Source of the DNA: Macrostomum lignano
Lineage: Eukaryota
Assembly: GCA_002269645.1 (NCBI GenBank)
Contig: NIVC01000708.1
Coordinates: 186,001 to 250,000 of the forward strand
DNA: 64,000 nt
Reading direction: 5' to 3'
Shown here: positions 1-39,577 of the stretch, piece after piece
Layout of the letters: every line of letters starts with the position of its first letter
Numbering within the stretch: the stretch's first letter is position 1
Made by a program: the position numbers and the translations under genes
The notes under the pieces: generated by a model
What the model was told of the DNA's origin: nothing
Database searches by the model: none
What the model saw: only the letters and a program-made list of their open reading frames with translations

Positions 1-60
1 ATTGTTACTGGCAGCACTAAGGCAGAGAGCCCGTGTGAAAGGGCAAGCCCAGGTTCAGGT

Positions 61-13700: not shown

Positions 13701-14275
13701 ACTGGCGATCGGGGGGAAGCTGAGCTCAGAGTGGCTTGTGGGCCTCGTCGAGTGCAGCGCAGTGCAGAATCTGCCGCCGGAGATCCGGTTCAAGACCGAG
13801 CACAGGGCCTCAGCTTGCTACAGCTGCGGCAATCACAAAGGTCTCATCAAACCTGATGTGCAGTCCTTACGCATGTACATTTCACAGTTCCTGTACGGAT
13901 TTCTAACAGCAACTGCTCTGCTAAGTGTGCTCTTGCTTGTCTTGGGCTCGGTGAGTAACCCCTCTCTCTACATTATATTTTCCGTCTCTGTGCTCTAAGC
14001 TGCCGTGTTGCATCTGCTAAATTCAGTTTTCAGTCATCAAATTCAGAGTAAAGAAGTCGTGGAAAAAACAAACTATTCCAATGGTAAGCTTTGGTTTTCT
14101 CATTCTGTACAGTCGACTCAAACTGTGACAGCTAAAGTTCGAACTCTTTGCGCTTTAGTCTGATCGATCCACGACGCCCGGATCTGGAGCACCGGTTGCT
14201 GCCGCTTCTGCTGCCATGGAGTATGAGAACTCTGGTTACAACCTGGAGGATGCTACTGGTGTCTACGTGATCTGA
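4755..14275 (+). CDS. IgSF type-I membrane receptor, paralog A, 5'-incomplete. Exons 4755-5003 (acceptor uncertain), 13418-13584, 13666-13950, 14027-14083, 14159-14275
   Basis: GT-AG exons with compatible phases (1,0,0,0). The joined protein reads Ig (VSC...QHSGSYTCQ...TVL) + YPP linker, then a membrane-proximal domain (VLVQF...NLTQLSF|[11 protein letters not shown]...[10 protein letters not shown]). The TM is [21 protein letters not shown]|FSVI, followed by basic [10 protein letters not shown] and a tail ending [19 protein letters not shown]. Each exon is homologous to one in the gene at 20885-38583. Confidence 0.75.
4791..5157 (+). repeat. ~367-bp near-identical copy of 22843-23209 (Ig exon plus downstream intron)
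   Basis: Direct comparison at offset 18052. Only a few substitutions were seen (ggctcg/ggttcg; aaattgaacgga/aaattgattgga). Identity ends at a (GTT)n tract. Confidence 0.95.
5224..6330 (-). pseudogene. Tyrosine recombinase of Ngaro element 1 (frameshifted)
   Basis: The SAM-like N-terminus [17 protein letters not shown] lies at 5893-6135. Catalytic motifs [19 protein letters not shown] (HxxR), LGDW and the terminal FRYL lie in ORF 5224-5859. Confidence 0.85.
6325..7740 (-). pseudogene. RT/RNase H of Ngaro element 1 (split over three frames)
   Basis: ORFs 7423-7740, 7164-7490 and 6325-7230 carry consecutive RT and RNase H motifs homologous to 10156-11898. Confidence 0.87.
8357..9382 (+). CDS. 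Ngaro gag-like ORF1 (SAP/HeH domain, coiled coil, C-terminal CCCH/CCHC finger)
   Basis: [30 protein letters not shown] (SAP-like) at the start and [28 protein letters not shown] at the end. ATG at 8357. Confidence 0.85.
   Translation: MDSTLGSMTVQALKDALREKALPTSGNKEELIGRLLAASQAERAPSDDDGDDDQDEDDVRRAAPAEEATEAQIRQTQKRIELLKLQKAEAQLRDEVQSIRSGAASPPLARGGPDIYASLFGDQSRQPRFDSAGAQRPPSALLIPEFLDERQQSGGWLTQERGRLTLKGATPSLSGVNFGQWVAANARIMQRLLETGQLVAPGTDGQPDCKSLNAYLNFNIHIGELLDAGYDWKVVLQYDQDMRLQQHSRQRDWDSPDLNLIIKHMTAPKNLRAAGPVAVGQGVQGHRSRGQLSSAGQVICGLFNSNKGCHRHTCNFAHICRICEGSHSKLQHSSVAAESKN
9373..11898 (+). CDS. Ngaro pol (RT + RNase H); frame open from 9271, likely entered by -1 frameshift at 9373-9379
   Basis: [32 protein letters not shown] and RNase H VETDAC/VDSS motifs. 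I found no stop and no ATG in this frame between 9271 and 10156. Confidence 0.85.
9490..10150 (+). repeat. 12-bp GC-rich tandem repeat (GGCCCTGCTGCC variants) inside Ngaro 2, reading (PAAG/PAAR)n in the pol frame
   Basis: Visible period-12 array with occasional 9-bp units and no frame-breaking indels. Confidence 0.9.
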
Positions 14276-17200: not shown

Positions 17201-17360
17201 TGATCCTGATCCTGTCCTGATCCTGATCCTGTCCTGATCCTGATCCTGTCCTGAACCTGTCCTGATCCTGATCCTGATCCTGATCCTGATCCTGATCCTT
17301 ATCCTGTCCTGATCCCGATCCTGATCCTGATCCTGATCCTGATCCTGATCCTGATCCTGA
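14296..17360. repeat. (GATCCT)n hexamer array, ~3 kb, with variant units
   Basis: Directly visible. Variants include CTGTC, AATACTGGT, GATGCTTAT and TTTTCCTTAT. Confidence 0.97.
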
Positions 17361-17879
17361 GCCTAATTCGATTTATTGTTCTCAGTTCATGAGGATGTGT
17401 TTATCCCAGAGCTAGATTTACCGTACACATAGGCCAATATATTTTATTTTACTGCGCTTAATACACCTTAGAAATAATGACGCAACACTCCCGAATACTG
17501 TAAAACAGTTTTGAAGCCGACAGTTCAATTACCAATATCACGTGATCTGTTTGATGCGGCAGCAAAATTCTTTTGATAGCTTTTTTCAGAATTTATTCAC
17601 AATTTACTTTTTTGCCAATAAACCATATGATATATAGTATTAGCTAATGCTAAAGATTTGTCTGTGTCTTGAGCTACATCATATCTAGCCTAAAGTCCAA
17701 AAGCTAAGCACTGCAGGTCATTTGATGTTTTCAACAACAGTTTAATATTGGTCCAAGACGTTTTAAAACAAATTTATATTACCATACCTAATTTCATACT
17801 AAATTATATTAAAAAACAACCATGTACACTCTTGCCGGCCACAAGTGGTCACAGAGGGGGGAGGTGTCAGAACACACGT

Positions 17880-18928: not shown

Positions 18929-19140
18929 CAATTCCTATACTGACTCGCGAGCAAGCCGTAAACCTATCTGTGACCTGCAGTTCACTGCATACTGCAACGG
19001 CTCAGAGTTCAACAGCAACTCAAGCGATCTGCTGCCCTGCCAACCCAGTCGCAGCAGCAGGGGAGGCCGCAGCCCAGTGGTCTCTCATGTGCCAGCGGCC
19101 CAGGCCCAGCAGGCACGATTCCCAAGTGCAGTCACAATAA
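18929..19140 (+). pseudogene. Frameshifted Ig pseudo-exon of the same receptor family (paralog B remnant)
   Basis: Acceptor tatttcag at 18928 in phase 1. It reads EQAVNLSVTC, then after a frameshift YCNGSEFNSNSSDLLPCQP...AQAQ, matching [24 protein letters not shown]...AQSQ of exon 22502-22738. Confidence 0.5.
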
Positions 19141-19584
19141 TTTGGGGCTAAATTGGAACCTCTTGGGTCTGCTCGTGAAATTAACGCCCTTGATGGCCAA
19201 CCCCCAAGGCACAGTGAAGTGTACATGCCTAACGATAAATAAAGTTAGGCCTGATGTACACTCCTGTTGTGACACAGAACTCGACACTTGCCAACTGGGT
19301 TCTGCTAACAGCTCACTGTTTTGATGGCATTCTGTGTTCTTAAATTTCCTGGACGCAATCATGCAATACAAAGGCCTTCAGACCCTCTGTCGACCTAGTC
19401 TATCATTGTGTTGAAACTTGTGTGAAATTTATGTCCTAGTCATCTGTCCTATGCAGCGCACCTGGCTCAGATAAAGTGGCAGCCGACTTTGCAATTTTTT
19501 TAAAGCCGCGCAGCAGCTGAGGATTGAGAGCCACAGGATGCTGACTCCGCCACCGTAAGTTTTATAGTATTATTAGTAAGCTTT

Positions 19585-20884: not shown

Positions 20885-23800
20885 ATGATGGAAGCTGCAG
20901 CGCTGATCTCCCTGTTAGGGGCTCTGCTCTGCATCGCTACCTGTCTCTGCGACTGTGAGTGAAAGCTTTTTAAACCCTCCAGGGTGTTTTTTCAAGCGAA
21001 ATGGATTTCTAACTTCTCAAGTTCCTATGTTGCAGGTGAGGTGCCGATTCGCAACAAGACTGTACTCAACGCCTGGCAGTCCTCTTATTCCTATTCTTGC
21101 TTTCACGAGAGAGACCAGCTGAATGAGAGCAATGTTCTGAACACAAGCCAAAGTTTTCAGTTCATTCACAGCAATGACAAAAAGCATTTTAACGATAGCG
21201 GATTTCACTGGTTCGCTGTGCAGCTGAGTGAGTCAGTGCTCATCGGTTCTGTGACAGTGAAGGGCAGCGAGGGTGAGTTACACCACAGACCAGTTTTATG
21301 AAGCACTGATTGACTAGTTGGTTAACTTACTTGACATAGCTTCAGGGGGTCCGGGCATCCGGATGCAGCGAGGCGTCGCCGCCCATTTTGCAAACCCCTG
21401 GCGACCAGGGAAGCTGGTGCTGCGGTGTTCTGCAGGGAGATCCGGTGGTGCCAGTGTCCGCAGCGCGGTAGCCCTTAGGTAGCGGACGAGCTGGCAGAGA
21501 TTCTCGGGCCTGAAAACGTCGGAGAGGTTCGAGTTTGGGCCGAGGTAGGTGAAGCCTGTCCTGAGTAAAGGCGGAGCATTCACAGATGAAGTGCTCCGCA
21601 TTCTCGACACCGGAGAGGCAGAAAGGGCATCATTCCTCGCTACGGATTTTTCCTGAAGGTAACGATGCCTGGCAAAACAGCCATGACCCGAGAGGTCCAT
21701 GGTCACCGCCCTGATGTCCCTGCGGTTGAGTCCAAGCAGGACTCTTGGCTAGTTGGTTGGTTTCATAAAAACAGCAGCTGCTTTTTGAAACAAAATAACT
21801 GAGGTAGCAGCATTCCTGAAACCCCCTTGCTTCCGGTATTTTTACAATCTCGTTGTTCTGGCTATAATTTCAGTCTTCTCGGATGCTGAAATGTTCCGCA
21901 GCTCAGCTGGCATCGAGATCTGGACTTCGAACTCGGAGGAGCAACTGTTTTCTGGCAACCATTGCAACTCAAAGAATATGAGCAAACAGTTTAATAAATA
22001 CCGGACCAGTTGGAAGCGTTGCGGTGTCACTACAAATAGGTCGATAAGTAGCACGCGTGTTGGGCTCTACATAGTGGACTGTCTTGCAGAGGTGAGCATC
22101 GATGCTACAGAGATTATGTGCTTAATTAGTTCATCTCACCCGGATCTCAAAATGTTGAGTGCAACATCCCAGGTCCGGTATCTGCTCCTCAGGAGAAACG
22201 TCAGCCTGAGCTTCTCAGCCAAAGACTACGGCTATCTGAGCGTCTCAGATCTGACGCTGCAGACAGTGCGCCTGGGTGAGGCTGTGGACTTTCCCAAAGC
22301 ACTTGAAGACCAGAGAAGCCTCAAAAGTGGCATGAAAATACCTGATAATATTGTGAGCTTTGGCCTGACTTTCTAGTCATCAGGCTTGTGCACTCTCTGT
22401 GCATTGGGGGCTGGCCTTCATGGGTCATGAATGACACGAGAACTCTCACGGTAAATAGCATTATAGCATTAAAGTATAAATTTATATGACTTGATTTGCA
22501 GTGCCATCGACAGACCAACTTGTTGCTGCAAACGAAAGCTTTAACGTGAGCTGCTCGTGCATTCTATGCAACGGCACGGAGTTGAGCACGAACTCAAGGC
22601 AGCTGCAGCTGTGCCAACCAGACGGAAACTGCACGAAAACCCGGAAGCTGTCGGTTGTGAAGGCACAGTCGCAGCACTCTGGCCTCTACACCTGCCAGCT
22701 TGGCTCTGCCGCAGAGTCAACTTCCATCACAGTGCTGTGTGAGCTGAGTGTCATTGCTTGTCTCCATATTTAAATACAATTAATAGACAAAAGCAACCAT
22801 AACGTGTTGCATTTTCAGCATCCTCGCATGCGCAAACAGCAGCCGAGAACGACAGTTTTGCAGTGAGCTGCACGCTGTACTTCAATGGTTCGGAGATCAT
22901 TGGTAACAACACAAGCGGCATGCAGCTGTGCCAACCAGATGGGAACTGCAGTGCGGGCCCGGAGCTGCGGATCAACAGGGCGCTGCGGCAGCACTCCGGC
23001 AGCTACACCTGCCAGGTGAACTCCACTCGAGTTTCAACCTTCGTTACCGTGCTGTGTGAGTTTCATTTCAATTTGAAATTGATTGGATAAAGAATGGCAT
23101 TTTAACTCATCTGAAATGTTTGTCGTTAGCCCTACAAAAAACTTAGACAATAAGTTTCCACTTGACTAAAAAGCTTGCGATACAGATAATGATGTCGTTG
23201 TGTTGTTGGTATTGTGTTTTTTATTTGTTGTTTAAAACTCAAACTCTCTTATTTGTAAAAAAATGTTGCACAAGCATCGTACTTGGATCTGGCTCAGCCC
23301 GATTAAAGCATCGAACTTGGATCTGGCTCAGCCCGATTAAAGCATCGAACTTGAATCTGGCTCAGCCCGATTAAAGCATCGACTTGGATCTGGCTCAGCC
23401 CGATTAAAGCATCGAACTTGGATCTGGCTCAGCCCGATTAAAGCATCGAACTTGGATCTGGCTCAGCCGATTAAAGCATCGAACTTGGATCTGGCTCAGC
23501 CCGATTAAAGCATCGAACTTGATCTGGCTCAGCCCGATTAAAGCATCGAACTTGGATCTGGCTCAGCCCGATTAAAGCATCGAACTTGAATCTGGCTCAG
23601 CCCGATTAAAGCATCGAACTTGGATCTGGCTCAGCCCGATTAAAGCATCGAACTTGGATCTGGCTCAGCCCGATTAAAGCATCGAACTTGGATCTGGCTC
23701 AGCCGATTAAAGCATCGAACTTGGATCTGGCTCAGCCCGATTAAAGCATCGAACTTGGATCTGGCTCAGCCCGATTAAAGCATCGAACTTGGATCTGGCT

Positions 23801-26800
23801 CAGCCCGATTAAAGCATCGAACTTGGATCTGGCTCAGCCGATTAAAGCATCGAACTTGGATCTGGCTCAGCCCGATTAAAGCATCGAACTTGGATCTGGC
23901 TCAGCCCGATTAAAGCATCGAACTTGGATCTGGCTCAGCCCGATTAAAGCATCGAACTTGATCTGGCTCAGCCCGATTAAAGCATCGAACTTGGATCTGG
24001 CTCAGCCCGATTAAAGCATCGAACTTGGATCTGGCTCAGCCCGATTAAAGCATCGAACTTGGATCTGGCTCAGCCCGATTAAAGCATCGAACTTGGATCT
24101 GGCTCAGCCCGATTAAAGCATCGAACTTGGATCTGGCTCAGCCCGATTAAAGCATCGAACTTGGATCTGGCTCAGCCCGATTAAAGCATCGAACTTGGAT
24201 CTGGCTCAGCCCGATTAAAGCATCGAACTTGGATCTGGCTCAGCCCGATTAAAGCATCGAACTTGGATCTGGCTCAGCCCGATTAAAGCATCGAACTTGG
24301 ATCTGGCTCAGCCCGATTAAAGCATCGAACTTGGATCTGGCTCAGCCCGATTAAAGCATCGAACTTGGATCTGGCTCAGCCCGATTAAAGCATCGAACTT
24401 GGATCTGGCTCAGCCCGATTAAAGCATCGAACTTGGATCTGGCTCAGCCCGATTAAAGCATCGAACTTGGATCTGGCTCAGCCCGATTAAAGCATCGAAC
24501 TTGGATCTGGCTCAGCCCGATTAAAGCATCGAACTTGGATCTGGCTCAGCCCGATTAAAGCATCGAACTTGATCTGGCTCAGCCCGATTAAAGCATCGAA
24601 CTTGATCTGGCTCAGCCCGATTAAAGCATCGAACTTGGATCTGGCTCAGCCCGATTAAAGCATCGAACTTGGATCTGGCTCAGCCCGATTAAAGCATCGA
24701 ACTTGGATCTGGCTCAGCCCGATTAAAGCATCGAACTTGGATCTGGCTCAGCCCGATTAAAGCATCGAACTTGGATCTGGCTCAGCCCGATTAAAGCATC
24801 GAACTTGGATCTGGCTCAGCCCGATTAAAGCATCGAACTTGATCTGGCTCAGCCCGATTAAAGCATCGAACTTGGATCTGGCTCAGCCCGATTAAAGCAT
24901 CGAACTTGGATCTGGCTCAGCCCGATTAAAGCATCGAACTTGGATCTGGCTCAGCCCGATTAAAGCATCGAACTTGGATCTGGCTCAGCCCGATTAAAGC
25001 ATCGAACTTGGATCTGGCTCAGCCCGATTAAAGCATCGAACTTGGATCTGGCTCAGCCCGATTAAAGCATCGAACTTGGATCTGGCTCAGCCCGATTAAA
25101 GCATCGAACTTGGATCTGGCTCAGCCCGATTAAAGCATCGAACTTGATCTGGCTCAGCCCGATTAAAGCATCGAACTTGGATCTGGCTCAGCCCGATTAA
25201 AGCATCGAACTTGGATCTGGCTCAGCCCGATTAAAGCATCGAACTTGGATCTGGCTCAGCCCGATTAAAGCATCGAACTTGGATCTGGCTCAGCCCGATT
25301 AAAGCATCGAACTTGGATCTGGCTCAGCCCGATTAAAGCATCGAACTTGGATCTGGCTCAGCCGATTAAAGCATCGAACTTGGATCTGGCTCAGCCCGAT
25401 TAAAGCATCGAACTTGGATCTGGCTCAGCCCGATTAAAGCATCGAACTTGGATCTGGCTCAGCCCGATTAAAGCATCGAACTTGGATCTGGCTCAGCCCG
25501 ATTAAAGCATCGAACTTGGATCTGGCTCAGCCCGATTAAAGCATCGAACTTGGATCTGGCTCAGCCCGATTAAAGCATCGAACTTGATCTGGCTCAGCCC
25601 GATTAAAGCATCGAACTTGGATCTGGCTCAGCCCGATTAAAGCATCGAACTTGGATCTGGCTCAGCCCGATTAAAGCATCGAACTTGGATCTGGCTCAGC
25701 CCGATTAAAGCATCGAACTTGGATCTGGCTCAGCCCGATTAAAGCATCGAACTTGGATCTGGCTCAGCCCGATTAAAGCATCGAACTTGGATCTGGCTCA
25801 GCCCGATTAAAGCATCGAACTTGGATCTGGCTCAGCCCGATTAAAGCATCGAACTTGGATCTGGCTCAGCCCGATTAAAGCATCGAACTTGGATCTGGCT
25901 CAGCCCGATTAAAGCATCGAACTTGGATCTGGCTCAGCCCGATTAAAGCATCGAACTTGGATCTGGCTCAGCCCGATTAAAGCATCGAACTTGGATCTGG
26001 CTCAGCCCGATTAAAGCATCGAACTTGGATCTGGCTCAGCCCGATTAAAGCATCGAACTTGATCTGGCTCAGCCCGATTAAAGCATCGAACTTGGATCTG
26101 GCTCAGCCCGATTAAAGCATCGAACTTGGATCTGGCTCAGCCCGATTAAAGCATCGAACTTGGATCTGGCTCAGCCGATTAAAGCATCGAACTTGGATCT
26201 GGCTCAGCCCGATTAAAGCATCGAACTTGGATCTGGCTCAGCCCGATTAAAGCATCGAACTTGATCTGGCTCAGCCCGATTAAAGCATCGAACTTGATCT
26301 GGCTCAGCCCGATTAAAGCATCGAACTTGATCTGGCTCAGCCCGATTAAAGCATCGAACTTGGATCTGGCTCAGCCCGATTAAAGCATCGAACTTGGATC
26401 TGGCTCAGCCCGATTAAAGCATCGAACTTGGATCTGGCTCAGCCCGATTAAAGCATCGAACTTGGATCTGGCTCAGCCCGATTAAAGCATCGAACTTGGA
26501 TCTGGCTCAGCCCGATTAAAGCATCGAACTTGGATCTGGCTCAGCCCGATTAAAGCATCGAACTTGGATCTGGCTCAGCCCGATTAAAGCATCGAACTTG
26601 GATCTGGCTCAGCCCGATTAAAGCATCGAACTTGGATCTGGCTCAGCCCGATTAAAGCATCGAACTTGGATCTGGCTCAGCCCGATTAAAGCATCGAACT
26701 TGATCTGGCTCAGCCCGATTAAAGCATCGAACTTGATCTGGCTCAGCCCGATTAAAGCATCGAACTTGGATCTGGCTCAGCCCGATTAAAGCATCGAACT

Positions 26801-29800
26801 TGGATCTGGCTCAGCCCGATTAAAGCATCGAACTTGGATCTGGCTCAGCCCGATTAAAGCATCGAACTTGGATCTGGCTCAGCCCGATTAAAGCATCGAA
26901 CTTGGATCTGGCTCAGCCCGATTAAAGCATCGAACTTGATCTGGCTCAGCCCGATTAAAGCATCGAACTTGGATCTGGCTCAGCCCGATTAAAGCATCGA
27001 ACTTGGATCTGGCTCAGCCCGATTAAAGCATCGAACTTGGATCTGGCTCAGCCCGATTAAAGCATCGAACTTGGATCTGGCTCAGCCCGATTAAAGCATC
27101 GAACTTGGATCTGGCTCAGCCCGATTAAAGCATCGAACTTGGATCTGGCTCAGCCCGATTAAAGCATCGAACTTGGATCTGGCTCAGCCCGATTAAAGCA
27201 TCGAACTTGATCTGGCTCAGCCCGATTAAAGCATCGAACTTGGATCTGGCTCAGCCCGATTAAAGCATCGAACTTGGATCTGGCTCAGCCCGATTAAAGC
27301 ATCGAACTTGGATCTGGCTCAGCCCGATTAAAGCATCGAACTTGGATCTGGCTCAGCCCGATTAAAGCATCGAACTTGGATCTGGCTCAGCCCGATTAAA
27401 GCATCGAACTTGGATCTGGCTCAGCCCGATTAAAGCATCGAACTTGGATCTGGCTCAGCCCGATTAAAGCATCGAACTTGGATCTGGCTCAGCCCGATTA
27501 AAGCATCGAACTTGGATCTGGCTCAGCCCGATTAAAGCATCGAACTTGGATCTGGCTCAGCCCGATTAAAGCATCGAACTTGGATCTGGCTCAGCCCGAT
27601 TAAAGCATCGAACTTGATCTGGCTCAGCCCGATTAAAGCATCGAACTTGGATCTGGCTCAGCCCGATTAAAGCATCGAACTTGGATCTGGCTCAGCCCGA
27701 TTAAAGCATCGAACTTGGATCTGGCTCAGCCCGATTAAAGCATCGAACTTGGATCTGGCTCAGCCCGATTAAAGCATCGAACTTGGATCTGGCTCAGCCC
27801 GATTAAAGCATCGAACTTGGATCTGGCTCAGCCCGATTAAAGCATCGAACTTGGATCTGGCTCAGCCCGATTAAAGCATCGAACTTGGATCTGGCTCAGC
27901 CCGATTAAAGCATCGAACTTGGATCTGGCTCAGCCCGATTAAAGCATCGAACTTGGATCTGGCTCAGCCCGATTAAAGCATCGAACTTGGATCTGGCTCA
28001 GCCCGATTAAAGCATCGAACTTGGATCTGGCTCAGCCCGATTAAAGCATCGAACTTGATCTGGCTCAGCCCGATTAAAGCATCGAACTTGGATCTGGCTC
28101 AGCCCGATTAAAGCATCGAACTTGGATCTGGCTCAGCCCGATTAAAGCATCGAACTTGGATCTGGCTCAGCCCGATTAAAGCATCGAACTTGATCTGGCT
28201 CAGCCCGATTAAAGCATCGAACTTGGATCTGGCTCAGCCCGATTAAAGCATCGAACTTGGATCTGGCTCAGCCCGATTAAAGCATCGAACTTGGATCTGG
28301 CTCAGCCCGATTAAAGCATCGAACTTGGATCATGGCTCAGCCCGATTAACCCACAGATCCGCCCTCAGTCGTGTCAACCCCACTGCTGCACGCTGCCAGC
28401 TGTAGTGACCTGTCAAATGTGACTGTACAATTCACTTTATCCGACTCTCAGCCGAAGCCTCAGCATTGGTGGTGTAAAATTTCATCTGATACAAGTGGAT
28501 TCGAAGCCCACAACCTGACCCTTCTGTCTCTGGTAAGTCTCTGTATCGGTACATTGTCGCTTGATGCGACAGTTTTTGCAGAATGTTGTAAAGTGAGTTT
28601 ACTCACTGGTTTGTTTTGCTAGTCGGTGTTTGGGGGTCAAGGGATGCGATTTACAAGCGTTCTCGAGTAAATATAAGAATAGCTCCACCCTTCGAGTGAG
28701 GGTTTGAAATTTTGTTTGTTGGACTAAACCTGACTGGTCTGTCTCTCGCTCACTACATTTTGGTGTCGTGCGGAGAAATCAATTGATTTGGGCTAGCGTG
28801 ACTCAGCACAAGCGCGAACTCTAAAATCTGCCAAGTCATGAGCAGCACAGAAGGCGCAAATGCAAGTGCAATGGGCGACCCACAGCGAGGGTCCCAACTG
28901 CAGACGGTGATCACTGCAGACGGTGAGCGATCAAGGATCGTCACTGCAGACGGTGAGCGAGTGCAGACAGTCGGCACGAGAGCCCTGCCTGACTGGATCC
29001 CAGGCCGGTTCGACCAGTTGACTCAGGGACTCGGACACATCAAAGGATTTCAGCACAGGCCGCGAGTCAACCCCACGGTGCAACCGACTGCTCAACCGTT
29101 GCGCAGAGTGCCGCTAAGCCTAAGGGATTCGGTTCAAAAGGAGATCGACCAGCTGCTGCAGCAAGGCATCATCGAGGAGGTCGACGCCTCAGACTGGGTG
29201 TCAAACCTAGTCGTGGTGCCAAAGGCGAACGGCTCGATCCGGATCTGCAACGACCTGAAAGGCCCAAACAAGAGCATCATACTGGACAGATACCCACTTT
29301 CGACCTTTGAGGAGCTCTCCGCCGAGTTCGCCGGGTTGCGATGCTTCTCCAAGTTAGACCTGAATTCGTCTTACCTGCAACTGGAGTTGGCCGAGGACTG
29401 CAGAAATCTGACGACGTTCGTGACGGAGCGAGGCCTATATCGATATCGGAGGGTGTGCTTCGGCCTGAGTAGTGCACCGGCTGCGTTCAAGAAGGTGATG
29501 GCTAAGATCCTCTTGACTTACTTTTGACTTAGCTGCAGGGCTGTCCCGGAGGGGACACAGCGGGAAGGCGCGGGCGCCCATTCCGCTAGTCCCTGAACGG
29601 CCGACGCGTCGCTATGGACGGAGGGTTGGCGCCGCCCAGGGAGGTCCCCCAGTGTCGCCAGCAGCTATGGTGCTCTCTGGAAAGGAGAGTTCAGACCTGC
29701 GGGTGGCCCGAAGGTAGCGCATGAGCTGATTAAAGTTTTCGGGTTTGCACGCTTCAGTAATAGATGTGTGTGGCCCGAGGTAAGTGAGTCTGGCCCGCGT

Positions 29801-32800
29801 GAAGGCGGGACAGATGCTGACGAAATGATCAGCGGTTTCGTCACCTGAGTTGCAGAAACTACAGGTGGCGTTGGTGGCGTTGCCCTGCAGGTACTGGTGC
29901 CTGGAGAAGCAGCCGTGACCAGAGAGGGTCATGGTGGCAGCCCGGATGTCTCTGCGCGAGAGGCGCAAGAGGAGCTTCCGGAGCTGGTGAGAGGGCTGAG
30001 GGACAGCGCCTCTGGATTGCCTGCAGTTCGTGCGGTTCGCCCAAGTCGAGCGGTGCTGAGTCCTGATCCACGCTTTGATGCGCGAGTCGATGACACAGCC
30101 AGGAATCGGGACAAGAGGTTCGGGGCCGAGAGAGGAGCCGGAGGCACCAACTTTTGCAAGGGTGTCAGCCAACTCATTTCCTCGGATCCCCACATGCCCC
30201 GGAACCCACTTAAGGGTAATTTTGTTGGCGGAACCCAACACATTGAGGAGTTTGATACAGTCAAGGACTGTAGCAGAGTTGGTGCTGCAGCCACTGATGG
30301 CGTGCAAGGCAGCTTGGCTGTCCGAATGGAAAATGATGTTCTTACCAGTAACGCCAGTGGCGAGAAGCTCTGCAGTGCAGGAGCTGATGGCCAGAACTTC
30401 ATTTTGGAAAACACTGGAGTTGACCCCAGTGTATTGAGCGTGGGTAGCGATGACCCTCCCGTTCAGAAAGATTCCAACACCAAAGCCGGTGTTGGCTGAC
30501 TGCTTAGAACCGTCGGTGTAGCAATGAAGCTCACCAGGGTTCCAATGGTCATTGATGTTATCGCGCGAGTCGATAGCTACGGAGTAGCGCTGTCTCAGGT
30601 TGAGCGTTGAGGCAATGCCATCGGTGAAGACGCGATTGGCCTGACACTCGTTGAGAAAGTTGAGGCACAGATCGCTATGCGGGACAAGGTTCCGCTTAGC
30701 AGGTGCTCTCATGTAAATGAATTTGACGCCGGCATCAATTAGACGCCGCGTCGTTCTAGCCGCCTCACCCCTGATGAAGAGGTCAAGAGGCGGAAGATTA
30801 AGGAAGGCCCCCATGCCAGCAAAGGGCGTGGACCTGGTGGCGTTGCAGATGAGCCTACACGCTCTGCCTTGGATCGTGTTGAGCAGGTCTGCATGGCTTT
30901 TGACCTGGGTAGCGCTAACCCAGACAACAGAGGCGTACGTAATGGCAGGTCTAACTACGGAAGTATAGATCCACCAAAGCCGCTTTGGGGATAGACCCCA
31001 AGAAGTGCCAAGTGCTCGTCGGAGCTGGGCCAGGATGGCTGAGGCACGCTTGGCTTTTGCTTTCACGTGGAGGACCAGTTGAGCCGGTGGTCAAGTATGA
31101 CCCCGAGACATCTGGTCTGGTGCGCGAAGGCAATATCTCTGCCGTAGAGCTGCAGAGGACGTATGTTCCAGCGTAGTCTGCTGGTAAACATAATGGCAAC
31201 GGTTTTGGGCTCAGAGAGTTCCAGACCATTGTCATTGGCCCAGGATTCTGCTTTGCGGATAAAGCTCTGCATCAGATCCCTGAGCGTGCTGGGAGACGGT
31301 CCTGCCACAATGGCCGTGACGTCATCAGCATACCCGACTTTGAAGACGGGGTCGGGTCGGGAGTCACTCAAAGAGCGTCCATGACCAGGTTCCAGAGCGT
31401 CGGGGTGAGGACTCCGCCTTGGGGTCCACCCTTACAGACTCTGGTGGAGGCAGTTTGCCCAAGAAGTTGGGCAGTGACCGTACGGTTGGAGATCATGTAC
31501 ATGATCCACCGTATGAGGGTAGCATGAGCTTTGCGATTTTGAAGGGCCCTCTGAAACGCTTCAAAGATAACGTTGTCGAAGGCGCCAACAATGTCAAGAA
31601 AGAGAGCCAGAGCGTAACCGTCACCCAGTACCGCCCTTTCAATCTTCTCGACAATCGCATGCAGGGCGCTGTCAGTCGACCTCCCGGTACGGAAGGCGTG
31701 CTGATTATTGCTGAGGGGCATCGCTGTCAGCTCGCAGGACAGCAGCCGCCAGAGAATAAGCCTCTCAGTGAGCTTAAGCATTGCTGACGTTAAGCTAATA
31801 GGCCGGAAGGCCTTGACGCTTTGGTAGTCACCCTTCCCAGGTTTGGGAATAAAGACTACCCGAGCTTCAGTCCAGCATTTGGGAACGTATCCCAGCTGGA
31901 TAGAGGCCCGCATAAGATTGCGGGTGAGTCTCAGGAACGAGGGTATCTTGGCTGCTTCACGAAGGAGAACAGGGTAGATACCATCAGGTCCAGGAGATTT
32001 GAAGGGTTTGAAGGTTCTGACCGCACGAGCGATTAGGTCTTCAGTGACAATGCCCGCCGCTAGGGTGGCTCCATCCATCGAATGGTTGGGCTCCGGTCTA
32101 GCAGTAGGTACCCTCGGGAAGAATGTGCTAAGCATATGCTGAAGCACTTCTTCAGGGTCTTTAGTAAGAGAGCCATCATCTTTTTTGATCATGGCTAATT
32201 TGGACATTTTGTCCATTGTAAGGGCCTTGACAAGCCTAGAAGTAGGTCTGTCTTGATCCAATTCATTGCAGAATTGGCGCCACTTACATTCCTTGGCCTT
32301 GCGCACTTCAGATTTGAAATTGCGGGAGGCTTGCCGGAAAAGCTCCATGTCCTCCGGGTTTCCGGTCTTCATGGCACGGCGATGAAGGCTTTTGGCCTTC
32401 CGCCTGAGTTTCCCCAGCTCCGGGTTCCACCACGGCGCCGAGGTCTTGCCTTTGTAGGCGCGAGCAGGACAAGCCGCTTCGTAGGCTTCAATAATGCAAC
32501 CTGTCAGCGTCTCAGCCATATGATCCACATCCTCGCAGGTCTCAATCGGACGTAAGTCCGTGAGTTCCTGCAGGTGCAGATCAAGGGCAGCCTTGTAGGC
32601 CGCCCAATCAGTGTTGCGGATATTGCGTCTCCAAGTGATCGGAGACTGGGTTTTAGTGTCCGCGATGTTAAAGGCGATAAAGCAGTGGTCAGACAGGGAG
32701 GGCTCCTCAGACCAGACTCTCCACTCCTCAACTCTGTCAAAGAGTCTTGGGGTAACGAGTGTGGCGTCGAGGACCTCGGTCCATCTGCCATTATTAAAGG

Positions 32801-35800
32801 TAGGAGTGCTGCCGCGGTTGCAGAGCATGAGGTTTGTGTTAGAGATGAGGGCCAGAAGCTCCTCTCCTCTAGTGTTGGTATCTTTGCTGCCCCAGTGCTT
32901 GTGGTGCGCGTTGAGGTCGCCCCCTAAGCACAGCTCAGCGTTCTGGGACTCGCAGTACTTCGCGAGGCGCAGTAAACTCTCAGGAGCAGGGTCTCTGTCG
33001 CCTGGGATATAAACCGAGGCAACAAGACACGTACGCGGAGAGAAATGATTAGATTGGATGACACAAAGGTCTCCATCAGAGAGATCAGTCCTCAGCCAAG
33101 CCTGGAGATGGCTAGCAGCGAGGATAGCCGCTCTAGGGCGGCTGTTCCCCGGGCCACACACATAAAAATCAGAGTAGCCAGAGGGAATGTTGGGCAACTT
33201 ACCGTTGCGCATCCAGGGTTCCTGGATCAGGATGAGGCCTGGCCTGTACAGCTCAGCAATCTTCATCAGATTTACTGACGCAGATACGCAATGCTGTAAA
33301 TTAATTTGCAGACAGAATGTCGCTCCTTTGGCAGCGTGGAGCTTAGTCATACTGTATTAAATGCAATTTCTGGCTAGAGCCCAGGGCCATCAAGGAGACT
33401 TGGACAACAGATCGTCCTCGTCCCAGGCCGCTGGGGCTTGACTGGGAGATGGGAGTTGGTCGACGTCCATGGCCTCCTCACCCCCACCGGCCCCCCCAGC
33501 AGAGTCCTCAGGCTCCGATGACAGGATGGAGGAAGCTTCCTCACCTGCATCTTTACCTTCAGACCCCACCAGGGTGGCCGAGGAGAGCTCGGATTCCGAA
33601 GACCCGGCCTCGTCCTCAACTCCTTCTCCGACTGGCAGGTTTGGTTCCCGGGGCTTGGCCGGAGCCGTTACCACGGTCGCCGAACTGCTGCTAGCAGAGG
33701 GGCGAGATGCAGCTTTGGCTTTGGGATCGGCTTGCGCCTTTCCTTGGGCCTTAGACTGCGCCCCGCTCTTGCCGGAGATGCCGGGGTTGGCAGTAGCCTT
33801 CCCTTTGGCAGACTTTCCTCGGCGCATCTTGAGCTTGAGGGCACCCAGCTGGAAAGAGGATCCATTAGGGTACCGACTCGCCCAAGTGCTGGAAAGGCCG
33901 AGGACAATTGAGTTGCCCGTCTCCCCCCTGCGGACTTTACGGTGATACACCAGTCCACTAGCAGGGAGGTCGGGGTTCAGACGCAGTAGGACCCGGCGAA
34001 TAACGTCTGGTCCAGCTGCGGTGCTCTTAGCAGGGACGAAAATCACATAGGGTATCGTCTTTGGACGCTGGCCCTCGCGAAGAAAAAGAGCTCCGCCAAG
34101 GTCAGCATCCAAGGAGACCGTCGGTAGCCGCTGGAGCAGCTGCCGAGCGTCCTCCTCGCTGCTAGGAGCAATAAGAACGAATGTGCTTCGCAGCACCATC
34201 CGCTCAACGCCGATGGAGATTCCCTCCTCGACAGTCAGCTCAATCAGATAGGAGTCAACAGCACTCCACACTTTTTGAAGCTGATCAGTGGTCCAGTCCT
34301 GGTCGCGACCTTGGATGATCACTCCCGGGATTTTGGCCTTGGCCTTCGCCGCAAAGGTAGCTCCCGAAGGAACCTCCTTGTTGGCAGTGGCCATTTGTTG
34401 CGCCGTGGTTTCGGCCTCAGCAGCCGCGGCAGCAGCTCCAGGGAGCGCCGCCGCTGAACTACTGGAGCTTCCACCGGCCGGCCCGCCTGGTTGCCTTGGG
34501 ACTCCAGTCGCTTCAGCATCCATGGTGGACGCCGCCGCTTTGGCCCCCGCAGCTCCCTTCTTGGCCTGCCTTTTGGCGCGTTGTTTAGCGCGTTTGCGCT
34601 CAAGCCGAGCCCGCTGAGCTTCATCGGATCTGCCAGATTTGGCCGGTCCTTTAGGCTCAGAGCTCGCGGTTCCCTTAGATCCACCAGCGGAGCTGGCAGG
34701 TCTTTGGGTATTATGAGTTTGGTAGCTCTGGTCGGATCTGCCAGCAGAGCCAGCCGGTCCTTCCTTTGCCACAGTTGAATCAGTCGGTTGGGATCTGCCA
34801 GCAGGGCCGGCCGGTCCTTCGGACTGAGGTTGGGGTTTAGAAGGGTCCCCGTCCCTAGAGTTAGCTTGATTATCCATAGACGGCTCGAAGGCCATGATAA
34901 AAGGTTGGTGGGCTACCCTCAAAGGGGCGCGGTACCCACCCGGCCGCTCCACCTGACCGGGCAGTAGGCCAATAGCACCCTCAAGGCTGGCCCGACACCA
35001 GGAGGGGGACCGCTTGCGACCGGACTACTCCCCGGCCTTCCAGCCCATCGGCACGGTCAACACCTTAGGCATTAGAGAGTACGTTGAGCAGTACCACGGC
35101 CTGCAGGTTGGCGAGCCAGACCCGCATACCCAAATTCGGCCGAAGCCACTGGATAGGGTCGCCAGCGCCGGAGCCCAGTCTGTCCAGCAGCCCTAGGGAC
35201 TGCCTTGAACACACGCGGGGACGAGTACCCTGGGTCGACTTGCGAGACAGCGTGGGGGGGGGGGTCTGCGGCTGCCAGAGGCAAATAGAGGGTGCAGACC
35301 TCCCACCAGCCTTGACCTGCTGAAGATAGGGGCAGGCGTGAAGCATCGCAGACCTTAGCCCATGGGCCTAGTCTGTCTCATACTTCACTGGCATGCTGAA
35401 TACGCCTTCGCGTGCGGCTAAGATCCTCAGTGGCATCAAAGGCGCAGTGCACTTTATTGACGACATCGTAGTGCACGCGGCATCAATAGAAGAGCACGAC
35501 AAGCGCCTGTTCAAGGTGCTGCAAGCTCTGATGACGCACAACGTGACTATCAATACGGCCAATTGCTTGCACCTGGCGCCAGGAAAAGGTCAACTTCCTA
35601 GGCTATGAGCTGAGCGCTTCTGGAGTCCGCCCGTTGCAGTCACACGTCGAAGCTATCGAGAAGGTACAGCCGCCAACGAACACCAATGAAGTGGCTGCGT
35701 TTCTAGGCGTCGTGAAGTACTTCGGCAACTTCATTCCCAGCCTCTCCAGCACGGCGGAGCCCCTCATGAAACTGCTGAGGAAGGACGAGTCGTGGAAGTG

Positions 35801-38583
35801 GACCAGTGAGTGCCAGCAGGCTTTTGAGCAGCTGAAGGCAGGAGTGTGCAAGCCACCTTGCCTCAAGTTTTTCGACGCAGATCAGCCGATCATCGTCAGC
35901 TGCGACAGCTCAGCATCAGCTCTCGGTGCGATGCTCCTCCAGCAAGACTCCGACGGCCAGTGGCGCCCGGTTGCCTTTGCGAGCCGAACTCTGAGTGCTA
36001 CGGAGCGCCGCTACTCGGCGAGCGAGAGGGAAGCCCTGGCCTGCATCTTCGCCTGTGAGCGCTGGAACTTCTTCCTTTACGGCCGACGGTTCGAGCTCCA
36101 CACCGATCACCAGGCTCTCACCACGCTGCTGTCATCATCTGGGAGCGGACACCGGCCACTCAGACTGCATCGCTGGGCTGATCGTTTGTTAAACTACTCC
36201 TTCACCGTCAAGTACGTCCCGGGTGCCAAGAACATCGTGCCCGACTTTCTGTCGCGCTGCCAGGACATGGCCGAGCCGACGGAAGGCGATGAAACAGACG
36301 ATCTGGAAGTCCAAAGAGTGCTCCTGGCCGAGGCGCTGACCGTGGTCACCGAGGACGAACTGGCGGAGGCAACGTCAAAGGACGAGCTCCTGGCACGAGT
36401 CGCAGAGTTCACAGTTTCCGGTTGGCCAGACAAGAAAAAGCTCGATGAGCGCCTGCTGCCCTACTGGAGTGTCAGGAACGAGCTGACTGTTTGGAGCAAC
36501 GGCAGGTGCTTGGCCATGGGAACTCGTGCCGTCATACCGGAAGAACTGCGCCAGCGAGTGCTCGACTTAGCGCATCAAGGTCACAAGGGAGTCAGCAGGA
36601 CCAAGCATCACTGCCGAGACACCGCGTGGTGGCCCAAAATGGACAGCGACATCGAGAGGTTCGTCAGCAGCTGCTCTGCGTGCATCATCAGTGAGAAGAC
36701 CTTCAAGCCGCATCGGACAGTGCTGACCCCGACCGAGTGGCCGAAGGAACCGTGGACAGAGCTGCAGATCGACTTGTTCGGAGAGCTGCACGAGGGTGCG
36801 CCAGAGAACTGCCGCTTCATACTCGGTGTACACGACCTGCATTCAAAGTGGCCCGAACTGGTCTGCCTCTCTTCAGCGACGTCTGCGACTATCATCAAGA
36901 GTCTCATGGCGCTGTTTTGTCGCTGGGGCATTCCGCGCGTAATCACCACCAATGAAGGACCCCAGTTCATCTCCCAGGAGTTCAACGACTTCCTAAAGGC
37001 GTACGGCATCAATCATCGTCAGACTCCGTTCTACCACCCTCAAGGAAATTCCGGAGTGGAGCGCCTGAACCGCGTAGTCAAAGGGCTTGAAGAGCCACCT
37101 TCAAGACGGCTACTCGTTCCTGGAAGCGGTGCAGTCCATCCTGTGGGCGTACCGATCGACACCGCACGCACTGACCGGCGTGACGCCAGTGGAGCTGATG
37201 CTCGGCCGCAAGATCACCACGCCGCTGTGGACGCTGCAGCCGAAGCGAGAGACTCGAGAGCACCCACTGGCCGATCAGATCCAGGAGCGGCAAAGACGGC
37301 AGTTCAAGCGGCTCAACAGATCCCGGCAGCCGCCGCGCCAATTCCGGGTTGGCGATCTTGTGCGAGTGCGATCTCCGCGGATGCGAGGCAAGCTGCAGAG
37401 CCACGTGTCACCACCTCTACGGGTCAGCGACGTCATCAGCCCGACGATCGTCAGGTTAGAGGACGGCTCAAGGTGGCACACCAGCCTCTGTATGCCTCAT
37501 GCGGAGCCCGAGGGTGCCAGCACGACTTCGGCAACGGCAATGCCGCCACAACCGCCAGTGGCTGCAGAGCCGGCAGCGCCAGAAGGTCCGACAGACCCGC
37601 CGCCGGCGACCGCTGAGGCCGACGCGGAGCTGCGGCGCAGTACGCGACTGCGGGCACCACCGTTGTGGTACGGCCAGGTCGTGACGCATTGATTGCCAGC
37701 TGTGAAGGGAATTAGTGGCTGTTAAGGAGGAGGGTGAATGTTGTAAAGTGAGTTTACTCACTGGTTTGTTTTGCTAGTCGGTGTTTGGGAGTCAAGGGAT
37801 GCGATGTACAAGCGTTCTCGAGTAATATAAGAATAGCTCCACCCTTCGGGTGAGGGTTAGAAATTTTTTTTGTTGGACTAAACCTGACTGGCTTGTCTCT
37901 CACTCACTACACAGAACTCAAGCGAAAACGGCTCTGTCAGCTCGTGGCAACTCAACATTGATAAGGAGCAGAGACCGGGATCGATGCAGGAAGCCAAGCT
38001 CGAGTGCAGCGCTGTGCAGCTCCTGCCGCCGAGAGTCGGGCTCCAGTGGGTGCACTCAGCCACAGCAGAGCTGGACTGCAGAAGCTCAAACAAAGCTCAG
38101 ACCTCCATGCCGACAGTGCTGGTGGCAGCATCGGCCACCATTGCCATATGCGTTGGTCTGCTTCTGGCAGCAATGGTTAGCGCTTGAAACTGCCTAAAAT
38201 TTGGTATCTTCGCTGGCTGCCAATCTCTCCGCTTTCTAAACTGATTGATGGCTTTGAAAACAACCGATTTTTTTCGTACTTTTAGCTGATGAAGCATCGC
38301 GCTTTGGCCTACAGCCCGGTGACAGCAACGGCAGCCGCCACCCGAGAGAGTGGAGTGAGCCGCTTCATTTTTTCCTTTTCTAGTTTTTATGCACTTTTAC
38401 ATAAAACCTTACTCTGCAATTGCCGCTCAGTCTCAGCACGAGCAGGAACTGGTAGAGCTCGGCTGCCCACCAACTGGAGCTTCTGCCACAGCTTCCGGTC
38501 CAAGTACGGAGTGCCTAGTCCGCCACTGCCAATACGGGAGCGAGTGCACCGTGTACTTGGATATTGTTGCCACGGGTCCGTGA
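20885..38583 (+). CDS. Lectin-like/Ig-superfamily type-I membrane receptor, paralog C (~586 aa). Exons 20885-20954, 21036-21272, 21874-22091, 22173-22275, 22502-22738, 22819-23055, 28357-28532, 37915-38175, 38286-38354, 38431-38583
   Basis: All nine introns are GT-AG with matching phases (1,1,0,1,1,1,0,0,0) and the joined 1761 nt contains no internal stop. The protein has signal peptide [23 protein letters not shown], a galactose-binding-like fold pattern (AWQSS...WFAVQL...IGSVTV...IEIW...VRYLLL...LSVSDL), two Ig exons (..SG.YTCQ..TVL) and a VLYPP linker. The [22 protein letters not shown]|LM is followed by KHR. Many NxS/T sequons are present. Confidence 0.8.
21324..21748 (-). mobile_element. 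5'-truncated LOA/R1-group LINE fragment in intron 2 of receptor C
   Basis: [43 protein letters not shown] matches the ORF2 C-terminus at ~29700-29990. It is flanked by the 10-bp direct repeat CTAGTTGGTT (21314-21323, 21749-21758). Confidence 0.85.
23272..28349. repeat. 34-bp satellite (GAACTTGGATCTGGCTCAGCCCGATTAAAGCATC), ~149 highly homogeneous units, within an intron of receptor C
   Basis: Period 34 checked on the ruler. Variants are mostly 1-nt losses in GG or CCC runs. No spacers. Confidence 0.98.
28584..28757 (+). repeat. Gypsy 5' LTR (174 bp)
   Basis: Matches 37739-37911. Confidence 0.95.
28838..29512 (+). pseudogene. Gypsy pol, N-terminal part (protease remnant + RT N-half)
   Basis: ORF 28838-29527 reads ...[10 protein letters not shown] and resumes after the LINE as [12 protein letters not shown]. 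Confidence 0.9.
29612..33350 (-). CDS. LINE ORF2 (APE endonuclease-RT-RNase H-Zn knuckle), split by two single-base deletions
   Basis: QINLQHC, LIQEPW, GDLNAHH and SDH (APE); QGGVLTP and GYADD (RT); YTDGSK, SDSQAAL and [15 protein letters not shown] (RNase H); [14 protein letters not shown]. Frameshifts near 31371 and 31068. Confidence 0.9.
33390..34895 (-). CDS. LINE ORF1 (DUF4780-like core, low-complexity flanks)
   Basis: Open frame 33390-34952 with first ATG at 34895. The core [13 protein letters not shown]...[16 protein letters not shown]...[13 protein letters not shown] resembles LOA-clade ORF1 (family assignment by eye). Confidence 0.75.
   Translation of the reverse strand: MAFEPSMDNQANSRDGDPSKPQPQSEGPAGPAGRSQPTDSTVAKEGPAGSAGRSDQSYQTHNTQRPASSAGGSKGTASSEPKGPAKSGRSDEAQRARLERKRAKQRAKRQAKKGAAGAKAAASTMDAEATGVPRQPGGPAGGSSSSSAAALPGAAAAAAEAETTAQQMATANKEVPSGATFAAKAKAKIPGVIIQGRDQDWTTDQLQKVWSAVDSYLIELTVEEGISIGVERMVLRSTFVLIAPSSEEDARQLLQRLPTVSLDADLGGALFLREGQRPKTIPYVIFVPAKSTAAGPDVIRRVLLRLNPDLPASGLVYHRKVRRGETGNSIVLGLSSTWASRYPNGSSFQLGALKLKMRRGKSAKGKATANPGISGKSGAQSKAQGKAQADPKAKAASRPSASSSSATVVTAPAKPREPNLPVGEGVEDEAGSSESELSSATLVGSEGKDAGEEASSILSSEPEDSAGGAGGGEEAMDVDQLPSPSQAPAAWDEDDLLSKSP
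35429..37692 (+). pseudogene. Gypsy pol, C-terminal part (RT C-half, RNase H, integrase); two frameshifts, second integrase Asp replaced (TTNEGPQF vs TDNGPQF)
   Basis: ORFs 35393-35608, 35634-37616 and 37087-37692, with frameshifts near 35578 and 37082. Confidence 0.9.
37739..37911 (+). repeat. Gypsy 3' LTR
   Basis: Matches 28584-28757; preceded by the PPT and followed by the TSD. Confidence 0.95.
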
Positions 38584-38625
38584 CACCTTGTCGTGCTGAT
38601 TGGCAATACCTCAATTTCTCAGCAT

Positions 38626-38781
38626 GTCAATCTTGTGATTGTCTCTGTCAATCTTGTGATTGTCTCTGTCAATCTTGTGATTGTCTCTGTCAATCTTGTG
38701 ATTATCTCTGTCAATCTTGTGATTGTCTCTGTCAATCTTGTGATTATCTCTGTCAATCTTGTGATTATCCCTGTCAATCTC
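38626..38781. repeat. 21-bp tandem repeat (TCAATCTTGTGATTGTCTCTG), ~7 units, just after the stop of receptor C
   Basis: Directly visible. Confidence 0.9.
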
Positions 38782-39231: not shown

Positions 39232-39577
39232 AGATAGGTAGGAGAGGTAGGGAGAGGCAGGGAGAGGTAGGGAGAGGTAGGGAGAGGTAGGGAGAGGTAG
39301 GGAGAGGTAGGGAGAGGTAGGGAGAGGTAGGGAGAGGTAGGGAGAGGTAGGGAGAGGTAGGGAGAGGTAGGGAGAGGTAGGGAGAGGTAGGGAGAGGTAG
39401 GGAGAGGTAGGGAGAGGTAGGGAGAGGTAGGGAGAGGTAGGGAGAGGTAGGGAGAGGTAGGGAGAGGTAGGGAGAGGTAGGGAGAGGTAGGGAGAGGTAG
39501 GGAGAGGTAGGGAGAGGTAGGGAGAGGTAGGGAGAGGTAGGGAGAGGTAGGGAGAGGTAGGGAGAGGTAGGGAGAGA
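39232..39577. repeat. (GGGAGAGGTA)n 10-bp array
   Basis: Directly visible. Confidence 0.97.

Follow-up and report, generated by a model that had tools for sequence, protein, structure and literature searches.

In the cytoplasmic tails of CD33-related Siglecs and of PD-1, an ITIM (immunoreceptor tyrosine-based inhibitory motif) is followed by an ITSM (immunoreceptor tyrosine-based switch motif). To our knowledge, almost no surface immune or recognition receptors have been characterized in flatworms. F-type lectin domains are joined to other modules and to transmembrane (TM) segments in known proteins (PMC5712786), and the molluscan VIgL molecules (FREPs, CREPs, and GREPs) are cited in PMC11999971 as lophotrochozoan multigene families that combine domains of the immunoglobulin superfamily (IgSF) with a lectin-type domain. 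The subject of this analysis is a gene of the flatworm Macrostomum lignano at positions 20885-38583 (+) of a 64-kb stretch of DNA, “the window” (64,000 nucleotides of contig NIVC01000708.1, positions 186,001 to 250,000). As a whole, the locus is best explained, and somewhat probably so, as a genuine receptor gene, the product of which would bind a ligand through a distal jelly-roll domain and signal through phosphotyrosines of its tail.

A ten-exon gene model and its homologs

The gene model was rebuilt without recourse to the exon list of the initial annotation, which had joined ten GT-AG exons in phase into a protein of about 586 amino acids (aa). The independent reconstruction led to 586 aa exactly, with an open coding sequence of 1761 nucleotides (nt), compatible phases, and all nine introns showing GT...AG with good consensus (Table 1). 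The motifs LAYSPV (38304-38321) and TVYLDI (38548-38565) were also recovered at the positions reported before. The ATG of exon 1 is the first after an in-frame stop and the donor of this exon reads ACT/gtgagt, while exon 9 is flanked by a strong acceptor and a strong donor. A nine-exon model of 613 aa, in which positions 22092-22172 were kept as coding sequence, was dropped. This in-frame stretch of 81 nt begins with gtgagc, ends with cccag, and was assigned as an intron because its removal gives a gapless alignment to the proteins P0001 and P0050, and the spliced product ...IVDCLAE/VRYLLLRR fits the homologs.

The closest protein matches in the UniRef and UniProt searches were all from M. lignano. 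Exons 2 to 4 have near-identical copies in P0050 (218 aa, 96% identical), P0007, and P0039, all of which then read into intron 4. Junction 2/3 (GSE/VFSD) is present in both P0050 and P0007, and junction 3/4 is found in P0050 exactly as modeled, with an alternative donor near 22059 in P0007. The alignment to P0001 spans junction 4/5. P0003 aligns unbroken from the second immunoglobulin (Ig)-like domain through junctions 6/7 and 7/8 (residues 297-481, 42% identity, E 8e-37), and the alignment to P0002 is also contiguous across these two junctions. The alignment to P0003 in a single piece indicates that exons 5.3 and 9.4 kb apart belong together. Five of the nine junctions are backed in this way by annotated M. 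lignano proteins, and the other four, 1/2, 5/6, 8/9, and 9/10, are predictions from splice consensus, phase, and analogy to paralogs only. At the 5' end, the homologs have leaders equivalent to exon 1. At the 3' end, comparison of the C terminus of exon 10 with CTVYLEIVADAN, followed by the stop, in P0005 and with VTEYLDIVSIG in P0047/P0048 revealed an ending CTVYL[DE]IVA common to P0005 and the gene, which sets the frame and the stop of exon 10. A paralog located upstream in the window has a matching 3' layout, in which a small basic phase-0 cassette lies between a TM exon and a tail exon. Judged by these homologs, the predicted ten-exon model is a genuine protein-coding gene of M. lignano.

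The window is eukaryotic and very repeat-rich. The gene extends over 17.7 kb because a fragment of a long interspersed nuclear element (LINE) sits in intron 2 (601 nt), a 5-kb satellite in intron 6 (5301 nt), and a 9.3-kb nested retrotransposon in “intron 7” (9382 nt); the unexpanded introns measure 76-226 nt. Free of these repeats, it would measure about 3 kb. The repeats in the long introns explain why the gene looks hidden, as it had been presented before, but it is not wholly so: the first ~210 residues were already in UniProt as the misnamed fragments P0050, P0007, and P0039.

The element in “intron 7” carries long terminal repeats (LTRs) at 28584 to ~28757 and 37739-37911, and the LINE nested in it contains open reading frames (ORFs) at 31368-33350 and 29612-31066. 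A 5-bp target-site duplication, CAGAA, is located at 28579-28583 and 37912-37916. That this intron is an insertion of an LTR element inside exon 8 had escaped the first reading of the sequence. The pre-insertion sequence at the exon 8 acceptor reads tttttgcag/AACTCAAGC, which indicates that the element landed 2 nt inside exon 8 and that intron 7 was originally 49 nt long. A usable acceptor (cacag/AAC) exists at the 3' end of the element because the target-site duplication copies the AG, and this acceptor is the one used in the ten-exon model. The locus is an example of an exon-interrupting retrotransposon turned into an “intron” by a target-site duplication that copied the splice acceptor.

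Table 1. Position of the exons, repeats, and neighboring elements in the window.
Feature	Position	Strand	Remarks
Exon 1	20885-20954	+	Start codon and signal peptide; ends in phase 1
Exon 2	21036-21272	+	Start of N-terminal jelly-roll domain; 96-98% identical to P0050/P0007
Exon 3	21874-22091	+	Middle of N-terminal domain (GIEIWT, GNHC, CGVT, IVDC)
Exon 4	22173-22275	+	End of N-terminal domain (VRYLLLRR ... DLTLQTVRL)
Exon 5	22502-22738	+	Ig-like domain 1; 237 nt, phase 1-1
Exon 6	22819-23055	+	Ig-like domain 2; 237 nt, phase 1-1
Exon 7	28357-28532	+	First half of Cys-containing membrane-proximal domain of unknown fold
Exon 8	37915-38175	+	Second half of membrane-proximal domain (CSAVQ..P) and TM helix (residues 492-513)
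Exon 9	38286-38354	+	69-nt phase 0-0 cassette: basic stop-transfer LMKHR and ITIM-like LAYSPV
Exon 10	38431-38583	+	Cytoplasmic tail with ITSM-like TVYLDI; stop codon TGA
LINE 3' fragment in intron 2	21314-21706	-	39% identity, E 9e-20, to the C terminus of the nested LINE ORF 29612-31066
34-bp satellite filling intron 6	23272-28349		150 copies, 99% identical; Tandem Repeats Finder
Original intron 7	28533-28581	+	49 nt; native acceptor tttttgcag/AA at 28580-81 intact
LTR retrotransposon	28584-37911	+	Pfam RVT_1, RT_RNaseH, Integrase_H2C2, rve
Nested LINE (non-LTR)	29612-34952	-	Inside the reverse-transcriptase region of the LTR element; Pfam Exo_endo_phos_2, RVT_1, RNase_H
Upstream family member, 3' half	13417-14275	+	Canonical splice sites
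Upstream paralog, stalk exons	13417-13584, 13666-13950	+	TM included
Upstream paralog, basic cassette	14027-14083	+	57 nt; analog of exon 9
Upstream paralog, tail exon	~14159 to stop ~14275	+	Second tail subtype, as in P0001 and P0003
BEL/Pao-like polyprotein element	61-3894	+	DUF1759, integrase zinc domain, DUF5641
DIRS-like element	5224-7230	-	Tyrosine recombinase and reverse transcriptase
SAP-domain ORF and reverse-transcriptase element	8336-11898	+	Contains GC-rich 12-bp repeat 9482-10154

Ectodomain, cytoplasmic tail, and gene family

The predicted protein is composed, in this order, of a signal peptide, an N-terminal domain (N-domain) of ~185 aa, two Ig-like domains, a membrane-proximal domain of ~120 aa, a TM segment, and a tail of 73 aa. 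Residues 1-23 form a hydrophobic leader with the peak of the Kyte-Doolittle hydropathy at residue 4, the single TM segment at 492-513 is followed by K/H/R, and all 21 N-glycosylation sequons (NxS/T) are located N-terminal of it. The type-I topology proposed in the initial annotation agrees with these features, and according to the predicted topology the product is a heavily N-glycosylated type-I membrane protein.

The N-domain contains disulfides. Pfam gave no match to the N-domain of the gene itself, even at E up to 10. With a profile of 12 N-domain sequences of the family, the four best matches in the PDB were all F-type lectins (3cqo, 1k12, 2j22, and 2j1r), albeit with marginal E-values of 0.016-0.46; the alignment covers the core HWFAVQL...VTVKG...IE.W, and the stretch encoded by exon 2 aligns with 1k12 and 3cqo. 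Pfam F5_F8_type_C matches 4 of the 12 family members below threshold (best E 0.0034), and F5_F8_type_C_2 matches 2 of them (best E 0.024). AlphaFold2 (AF2) models were made of the homologs P0050 and P0002 and not of the spliced protein. Their mean predicted local distance difference test (pLDDT) values were 58 and 51, respectively, with 70-89 in the core strands. For both models, all Foldseek matches with E<1e-3 were galactose-binding-domain-like folds, including the EndoS carbohydrate-binding module (CBM), CBM32, SUN, the muskelin discoidin domain, F-lectins, XRCC1-N, and DOC-like domains. The P0050 model matched 3cqo with E 1.8e-4 and 1k12 with E 9.6e-4. In the case of the P0002 model, 3cqo ranked first (E 5.2e-5) and 1k12 third (TM-score 0.50), while other galactose-binding-domain-like folds scored similarly.

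Three independent lines, the family profile, the Pfam matches of individual members, and Foldseek, agree here, in line with the earlier proposal of a divergent F-type-lectin/F5-8 type C fold, and the check by AlphaFold and Foldseek suggested for it returned jelly-roll matches exclusively, although with homolog models of low pLDDT. With moderate confidence, this weak but concordant evidence suggests that the N-domain is a galactose-binding-domain-like jelly roll that is nearest to the F-type lectins. The jelly-roll topology of the galactose-binding-domain-like superfamily (F5/8 type C clan) is found at the same moderate confidence.

The second Ig-like domain is 48% identical to the first and is matched by Pfam Ig_2 (E 2.5e-5) with 24.9 bits against a cut-off of 27, one of several Ig models that come in just under threshold; the models ig, I-set, Ig_3, and V-set match the same stretch. 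Against the PDB, a profile of eight family Ig exons picked up Robo2, titin, contactin, CEACAM1, and Fc receptors at E 3.6e-10 to 1e-5. Invariant in these exons are C18, C38, C44, Y63, and C65 (C...C, G.C, Y.C), and both Ig-like domains possess the B-F cysteine pair and the Y-x-C of the immunoglobulin superfamily. UniProt labels several homologs as “Ig-like domain-containing.” The membrane-proximal module encoded by exons 7 and 8 has the pattern PPS...C...VQF...H.C...NLT...S.W...CSAVQ..P...H...C, which is conserved in the family. Its profile had no match in the PDB and Pfam, and AF2 gave pLDDT <50. The Ig domains annotated at first are to be accepted for the two Ig-like exons; the third extracellular module is not called Ig here.

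The tail contains three tyrosines and, with LAYSPV (residue 520) and TVYLDI (residue 576), fits both the ITIM [SIVL]xYxx[IVL] and the ITSM TxYxx[VI]. In shuffles of the tail, the presence of both had P = 0.002. Among the family tails that could be read, the motif TxYL[DE]IV occurs near the C terminus of this protein, of P0005 (TVYLEIVADAN, followed by the stop), and of P0047/P0048 (TEYLDIVSIG...), the N-domains of which are only 28-44% identical to that of this protein. Maintenance of the motif across three branches with divergent N-domains is the best evidence that it matters. It is absent from P0001, P0003, P0012, and the upstream paralog. A second tail type, [DE]YENS.Y[KN]LE[ND]A.G.Y.., is present in P0001, P0003, and the upstream paralog and carries a YxN site. 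A lack of conservation of the tyrosine motifs among paralogs and orthologs had been proposed as a possible refutation of the initial annotation, and the outcome differed between the two motifs: the ITSM-like motif recurs in P0005 and P0047/P0048, but the ITIM-like one is seen only here.

P0001 to P0012 and P0016 are paralogs of the gene. HMMER was run exhaustively with P0001 as the query against 1.84 billion representatives and yielded 37 proteins, about 17 of them with an N-domain. At 50% identity there are about 17 N-domain clusters, 16 from M. lignano and one from a metagenome contig (JGI metagenome 3300040801, positions 1-1598). This contig is AT-rich genomic DNA from a different organism and contains the last part of one N-domain, a second N-domain that is complete within a single ORF of 211 aa, and an Ig exon with the same ...VVC/gt phase-1 boundary. 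This indicates that the family, and the order of N-domain followed by Ig, exist outside of M. lignano. The ectodomains of the family vary and have no, one, or two Ig-like domains, with or without the stalk module. UniProt assigns conflicting automatic names to the same N-domain: fibrinogen C-terminal, LamG, CUB, MATH, and Sushi. Literature searches on Macrostomum with ITIM or lectin, and on F-type lectins in Platyhelminthes, gave nothing relevant, and no paper on the family was found. The family is unnamed, uncharacterized, and known almost only from M. lignano; the earlier statement that no named family has such an architecture agrees with the searches, in which none turned up.

The annotated M. 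lignano isoform pairs P0001/P0002, P0003/P0040, and P0047/P0048 differ by whole modules: an Ig versus a stalk exon, presence or absence of the juxtamembrane cassette, and presence or absence of the TM exon. This suggests alternative splicing of phase-compatible exons, possibly leading to soluble forms, or else annotation artifacts.

Proposed function of the receptor and alternative readings

The most likely mechanism is binding of a ligand by the distal jelly roll combined with phosphotyrosine signaling via the conserved C-terminal tyrosine. The jelly-roll domain, carried on the Ig-like and stalk modules, would bind an extracellular ligand, which could be a glycan or a protein because the canonical fucose and calcium residues are missing. 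The tail tyrosines, chiefly that of the conserved C-terminal T-x-Y-L-[D/E]-I-V, would be phosphorylated, and the phosphorylated tail would recruit a Src homology 2 (SH2)-domain protein. A phosphatase of the SHP type, generating an inhibitory signal, is one candidate partner. The further-reaching reading as a glycan-sensing inhibitory self/non-self receptor is hypothetical: the conserved ITSM-like motif is the one fact that supports it, it has several gaps, and the inhibitory self/non-self function in particular is pure hypothesis.

A number of points weigh against the main interpretation. The full-length mRNA is a predicted one, and the annotated fragments end by read-through into intron 4. 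With the C-terminal half as query, a word-index protein search matched no database protein, which is a weak negative because the index is patchy: the whole protein as query matched only P0001 and P0002, and a profile search of the same index returned 4 proteins and missed members of its own query alignment. The native exon 8 acceptor is intact upstream of the LTR, and its use truncates the protein. In the tail, LAYSPV is present in no other family tail examined, the tyrosine of the second tail type (EYENSxY[KN]LE..G.Y) is in the same place but followed at Y+3 by E instead of the I of the ITSM, and a YxxPhi sorting signal is matched by any ITIM or ITSM as well. The fold assignment of the N-domain is provisional because both AF2 models are of low confidence. 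Finally, F-type lectins bind fucose with a motif HX24RXDX4(R/K) and calcium with a motif h2DGx (PMC5712786); the fucose motif was not found in the protein with a relaxed regular expression, and [VAI][VAI]DG[NDS] is absent from the N-domain.

It is possible, although rather doubtful, that the protein is an adhesion or recognition molecule without an immune-inhibitory role, serving, for instance, cell-cell adhesion, the epidermis or glands, or reproduction, and that Y-L-[D/E]-I is a YxxPhi endocytic or sorting signal. Y-L-D-I indeed fits YxxPhi, the signal type bound by AP-2 mu2, and the motif is near the C terminus in all three branches. Adhesion proteins often contain Ig and discoidin-type modules, the PDB matches included Robo, contactin, titin, and CEACAM, and the ITIM is not conserved. 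However, conservation extends to the Thr at Y-2 and to the residues past Y+3 (I-V), none of which YxxPhi needs. Phosphotyrosine signaling in the family is suggested, moreover, by the sister tail subtype with its Y-E-N, an SH2 site of a known (Grb2-class) type.

Also unlikely, but to be taken seriously, is that this copy was disabled by the transposon and that the full-length receptor is produced only from uninterrupted copies elsewhere in the genome. Splicing of exon 7 to the native acceptor reads AAT GTT GTA AAG TGA (...LSL-NVVK-stop): exon 7 would join position 28582, read into the LTR, and yield a truncated, secreted ectodomain. Alternatively, the frame would be shifted via an 11-nt micro-exon ending AAA/gtgagt. 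The choice is between a nearby intact acceptor and one 9.4 kb away, and the native one should compete well because the other unexpanded introns of the gene are similarly short. Since it survives beside the recreated acceptor, full-length expression from this copy is in doubt, and near-identical copies do exist elsewhere in the genome (P0050, P0007, and P0039). On the other side, the target-site duplication recreates cag/AA after a pyrimidine-rich LTR end. The LTRs differ at ~8 of 174 positions, which indicates that the insertion is not fresh, and yet 586 codons are open and the splice sites intact, which would be unexpected if the copy were long dead. The frame, still open after an insertion that is not fresh, argues mildly for continued function. 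It is nevertheless a standing caveat that the retrotransposon may have crippled this copy in particular.

As an extension of the signaling-receptor reading, the family may be a set of clustered receptors that evolved in Macrostomum, in which those with TxYL[DE]IV (ITSM-like) and those with EYENxY...GxY (YxN-like) tails form inhibitory/activating pairs for the recognition of self/non-self or of mate/sperm, convergent with Siglecs and natural killer (NK)-cell receptor clusters. One gene of each tail type is adjacent within the window. This scenario is speculative and quite improbable.

About as improbable, or slightly more so, is a bona fide fucose-binding F-type lectin receptor. F-type lectins were the best sequence and structure matches, and, in our reading of the alignment, a His (KKH, residue 75) is placed 8 residues before the W of HWF, similar to His52 before WW in the eel agglutinin. 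However, the family does not conserve this His, which aligns with the lectin His, a Ser stands here in the place of the key Arg (Arg79) (VKGSE; other members VKGRE), and the vicinal Cys-Cys is missing in addition to both binding motifs, with marginal E-values throughout. Membership in the F-type lectin family is not supported by the predicted sequence. The proposed “glycan-sensing” is not supported by this comparison: glycan binding is not established because the fucose and calcium motifs are absent, and it appears possible but not implied.

That the model is a chance run of open frames and GT/AG dinucleotides without any gene is excluded for all practical purposes and counted as refuted by homology, because protein homologs exist for every exon but 1 and 9, with that of exon 10 resting on a short tail match, and several junctions are spanned.

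Neighboring sequence and comparison with known systems

Upstream of the gene, N-domain exons belonging to the upstream paralog were not found in the transposon-filled region 1-13400. Positions 4791-5182 (+) hold an incomplete copy of exon 6 that continues into the first ~130-180 nt of intron 6. It is very recent, with 1 synonymous mismatch in 213 coding nt, has no acceptor because it begins 24 nt inside the exon, and is presumably a dead fragment. Closer to the gene, just upstream of it, 18984-19320 (+) contains weak Ig-like exon remnants (CNGSEFNSNSSDLLPCQP ... DTCQLGSA) with split frames and one stop, which looks like a decayed family exon. A (TGATCC)n microsatellite of 3 kb with about 517 copies (14296-17364) directly follows the stop of the upstream paralog, and a 21-bp repeat (38625-38780) and a 10-bp repeat (39236-39576) are positioned downstream of the stop of the studied gene.

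With its lectin-type fold, Ig domains, and conserved tyrosine motif, this family, seen so far almost only in Macrostomum, would offer a concrete set of candidate recognition receptors in flatworms. These candidates are testable because RNA interference and transgenesis work in M. lignano. Defining the family would also correct annotation because the N-domain and the membrane-proximal domain lack Pfam coverage and the UniProt names are contradictory.

Compared with known systems, the N-domain resembles most the F-type lectins (eel agglutinin 1k12 and striped-bass FBP32 3cqo), its best profile and Foldseek matches. The shared pattern is aromatic-W-x-V-x-L, then V-T-[IV]-x, a basic/acidic loop, and I-E-[IV]. 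F-type lectins include membrane-bound chimeras such as Drosophila furrowed. In contrast to the protein studied here, they possess the fucose triad, the calcium motif, and the vicinal disulfide, and their cysteine pattern is different. The N-domain has an extra N-terminal segment of ~40 residues (WQSS...CF), and no Pfam model reaches the threshold. In the review of F-type lectins (PMC5712786), no pairing of such a domain with Ig domains and a tail carrying tyrosine motifs was found.

Like the predicted protein, the discoidin-domain membrane proteins DDR1/2, neuropilins, and DCBLD2 are single-pass receptors with a galactose-binding-domain-like jelly roll in their ectodomain, and DCBLD2 signals through tail tyrosines. 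The M. lignano protein, however, has no kinase, CUB, MAM, or LCCL, and its discoidin match is weaker than the F-type lectin match. With the VIgL molecules it has in common that IgSF domains are joined to a lectin-type domain in a multigene family. VIgL proteins are secreted, with the IgSF part N-terminal and a fibrinogen, C-type lectin, or galectin domain C-terminal, whereas the lectin-like domain here is N-terminal and the protein is membrane-anchored with a signaling-type tail.

CD33-related Siglecs and PD-1 provide the likeness in layout: a distal binding domain, Ig spacers, a TM segment, a proximal ITIM-like motif, and a distal TxYxx[IV]. Their two tyrosines are about 18-25 residues apart, compared with 56 residues here, and the ITIM here is not conserved among the paralogs. 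Siglecs bind with an N-terminal V-set Ig domain that contains the sialic-acid Arg, which was not found in this protein; a predicted jelly roll is at this position instead, and there is no sequence homology. Of the “Siglec-like layout” of the initial annotation, the analogous design can be kept but not a membership. Receptors that combine IgSF domains with a lectin fold are a kind already known, and the likeness to Siglecs is one of design only.

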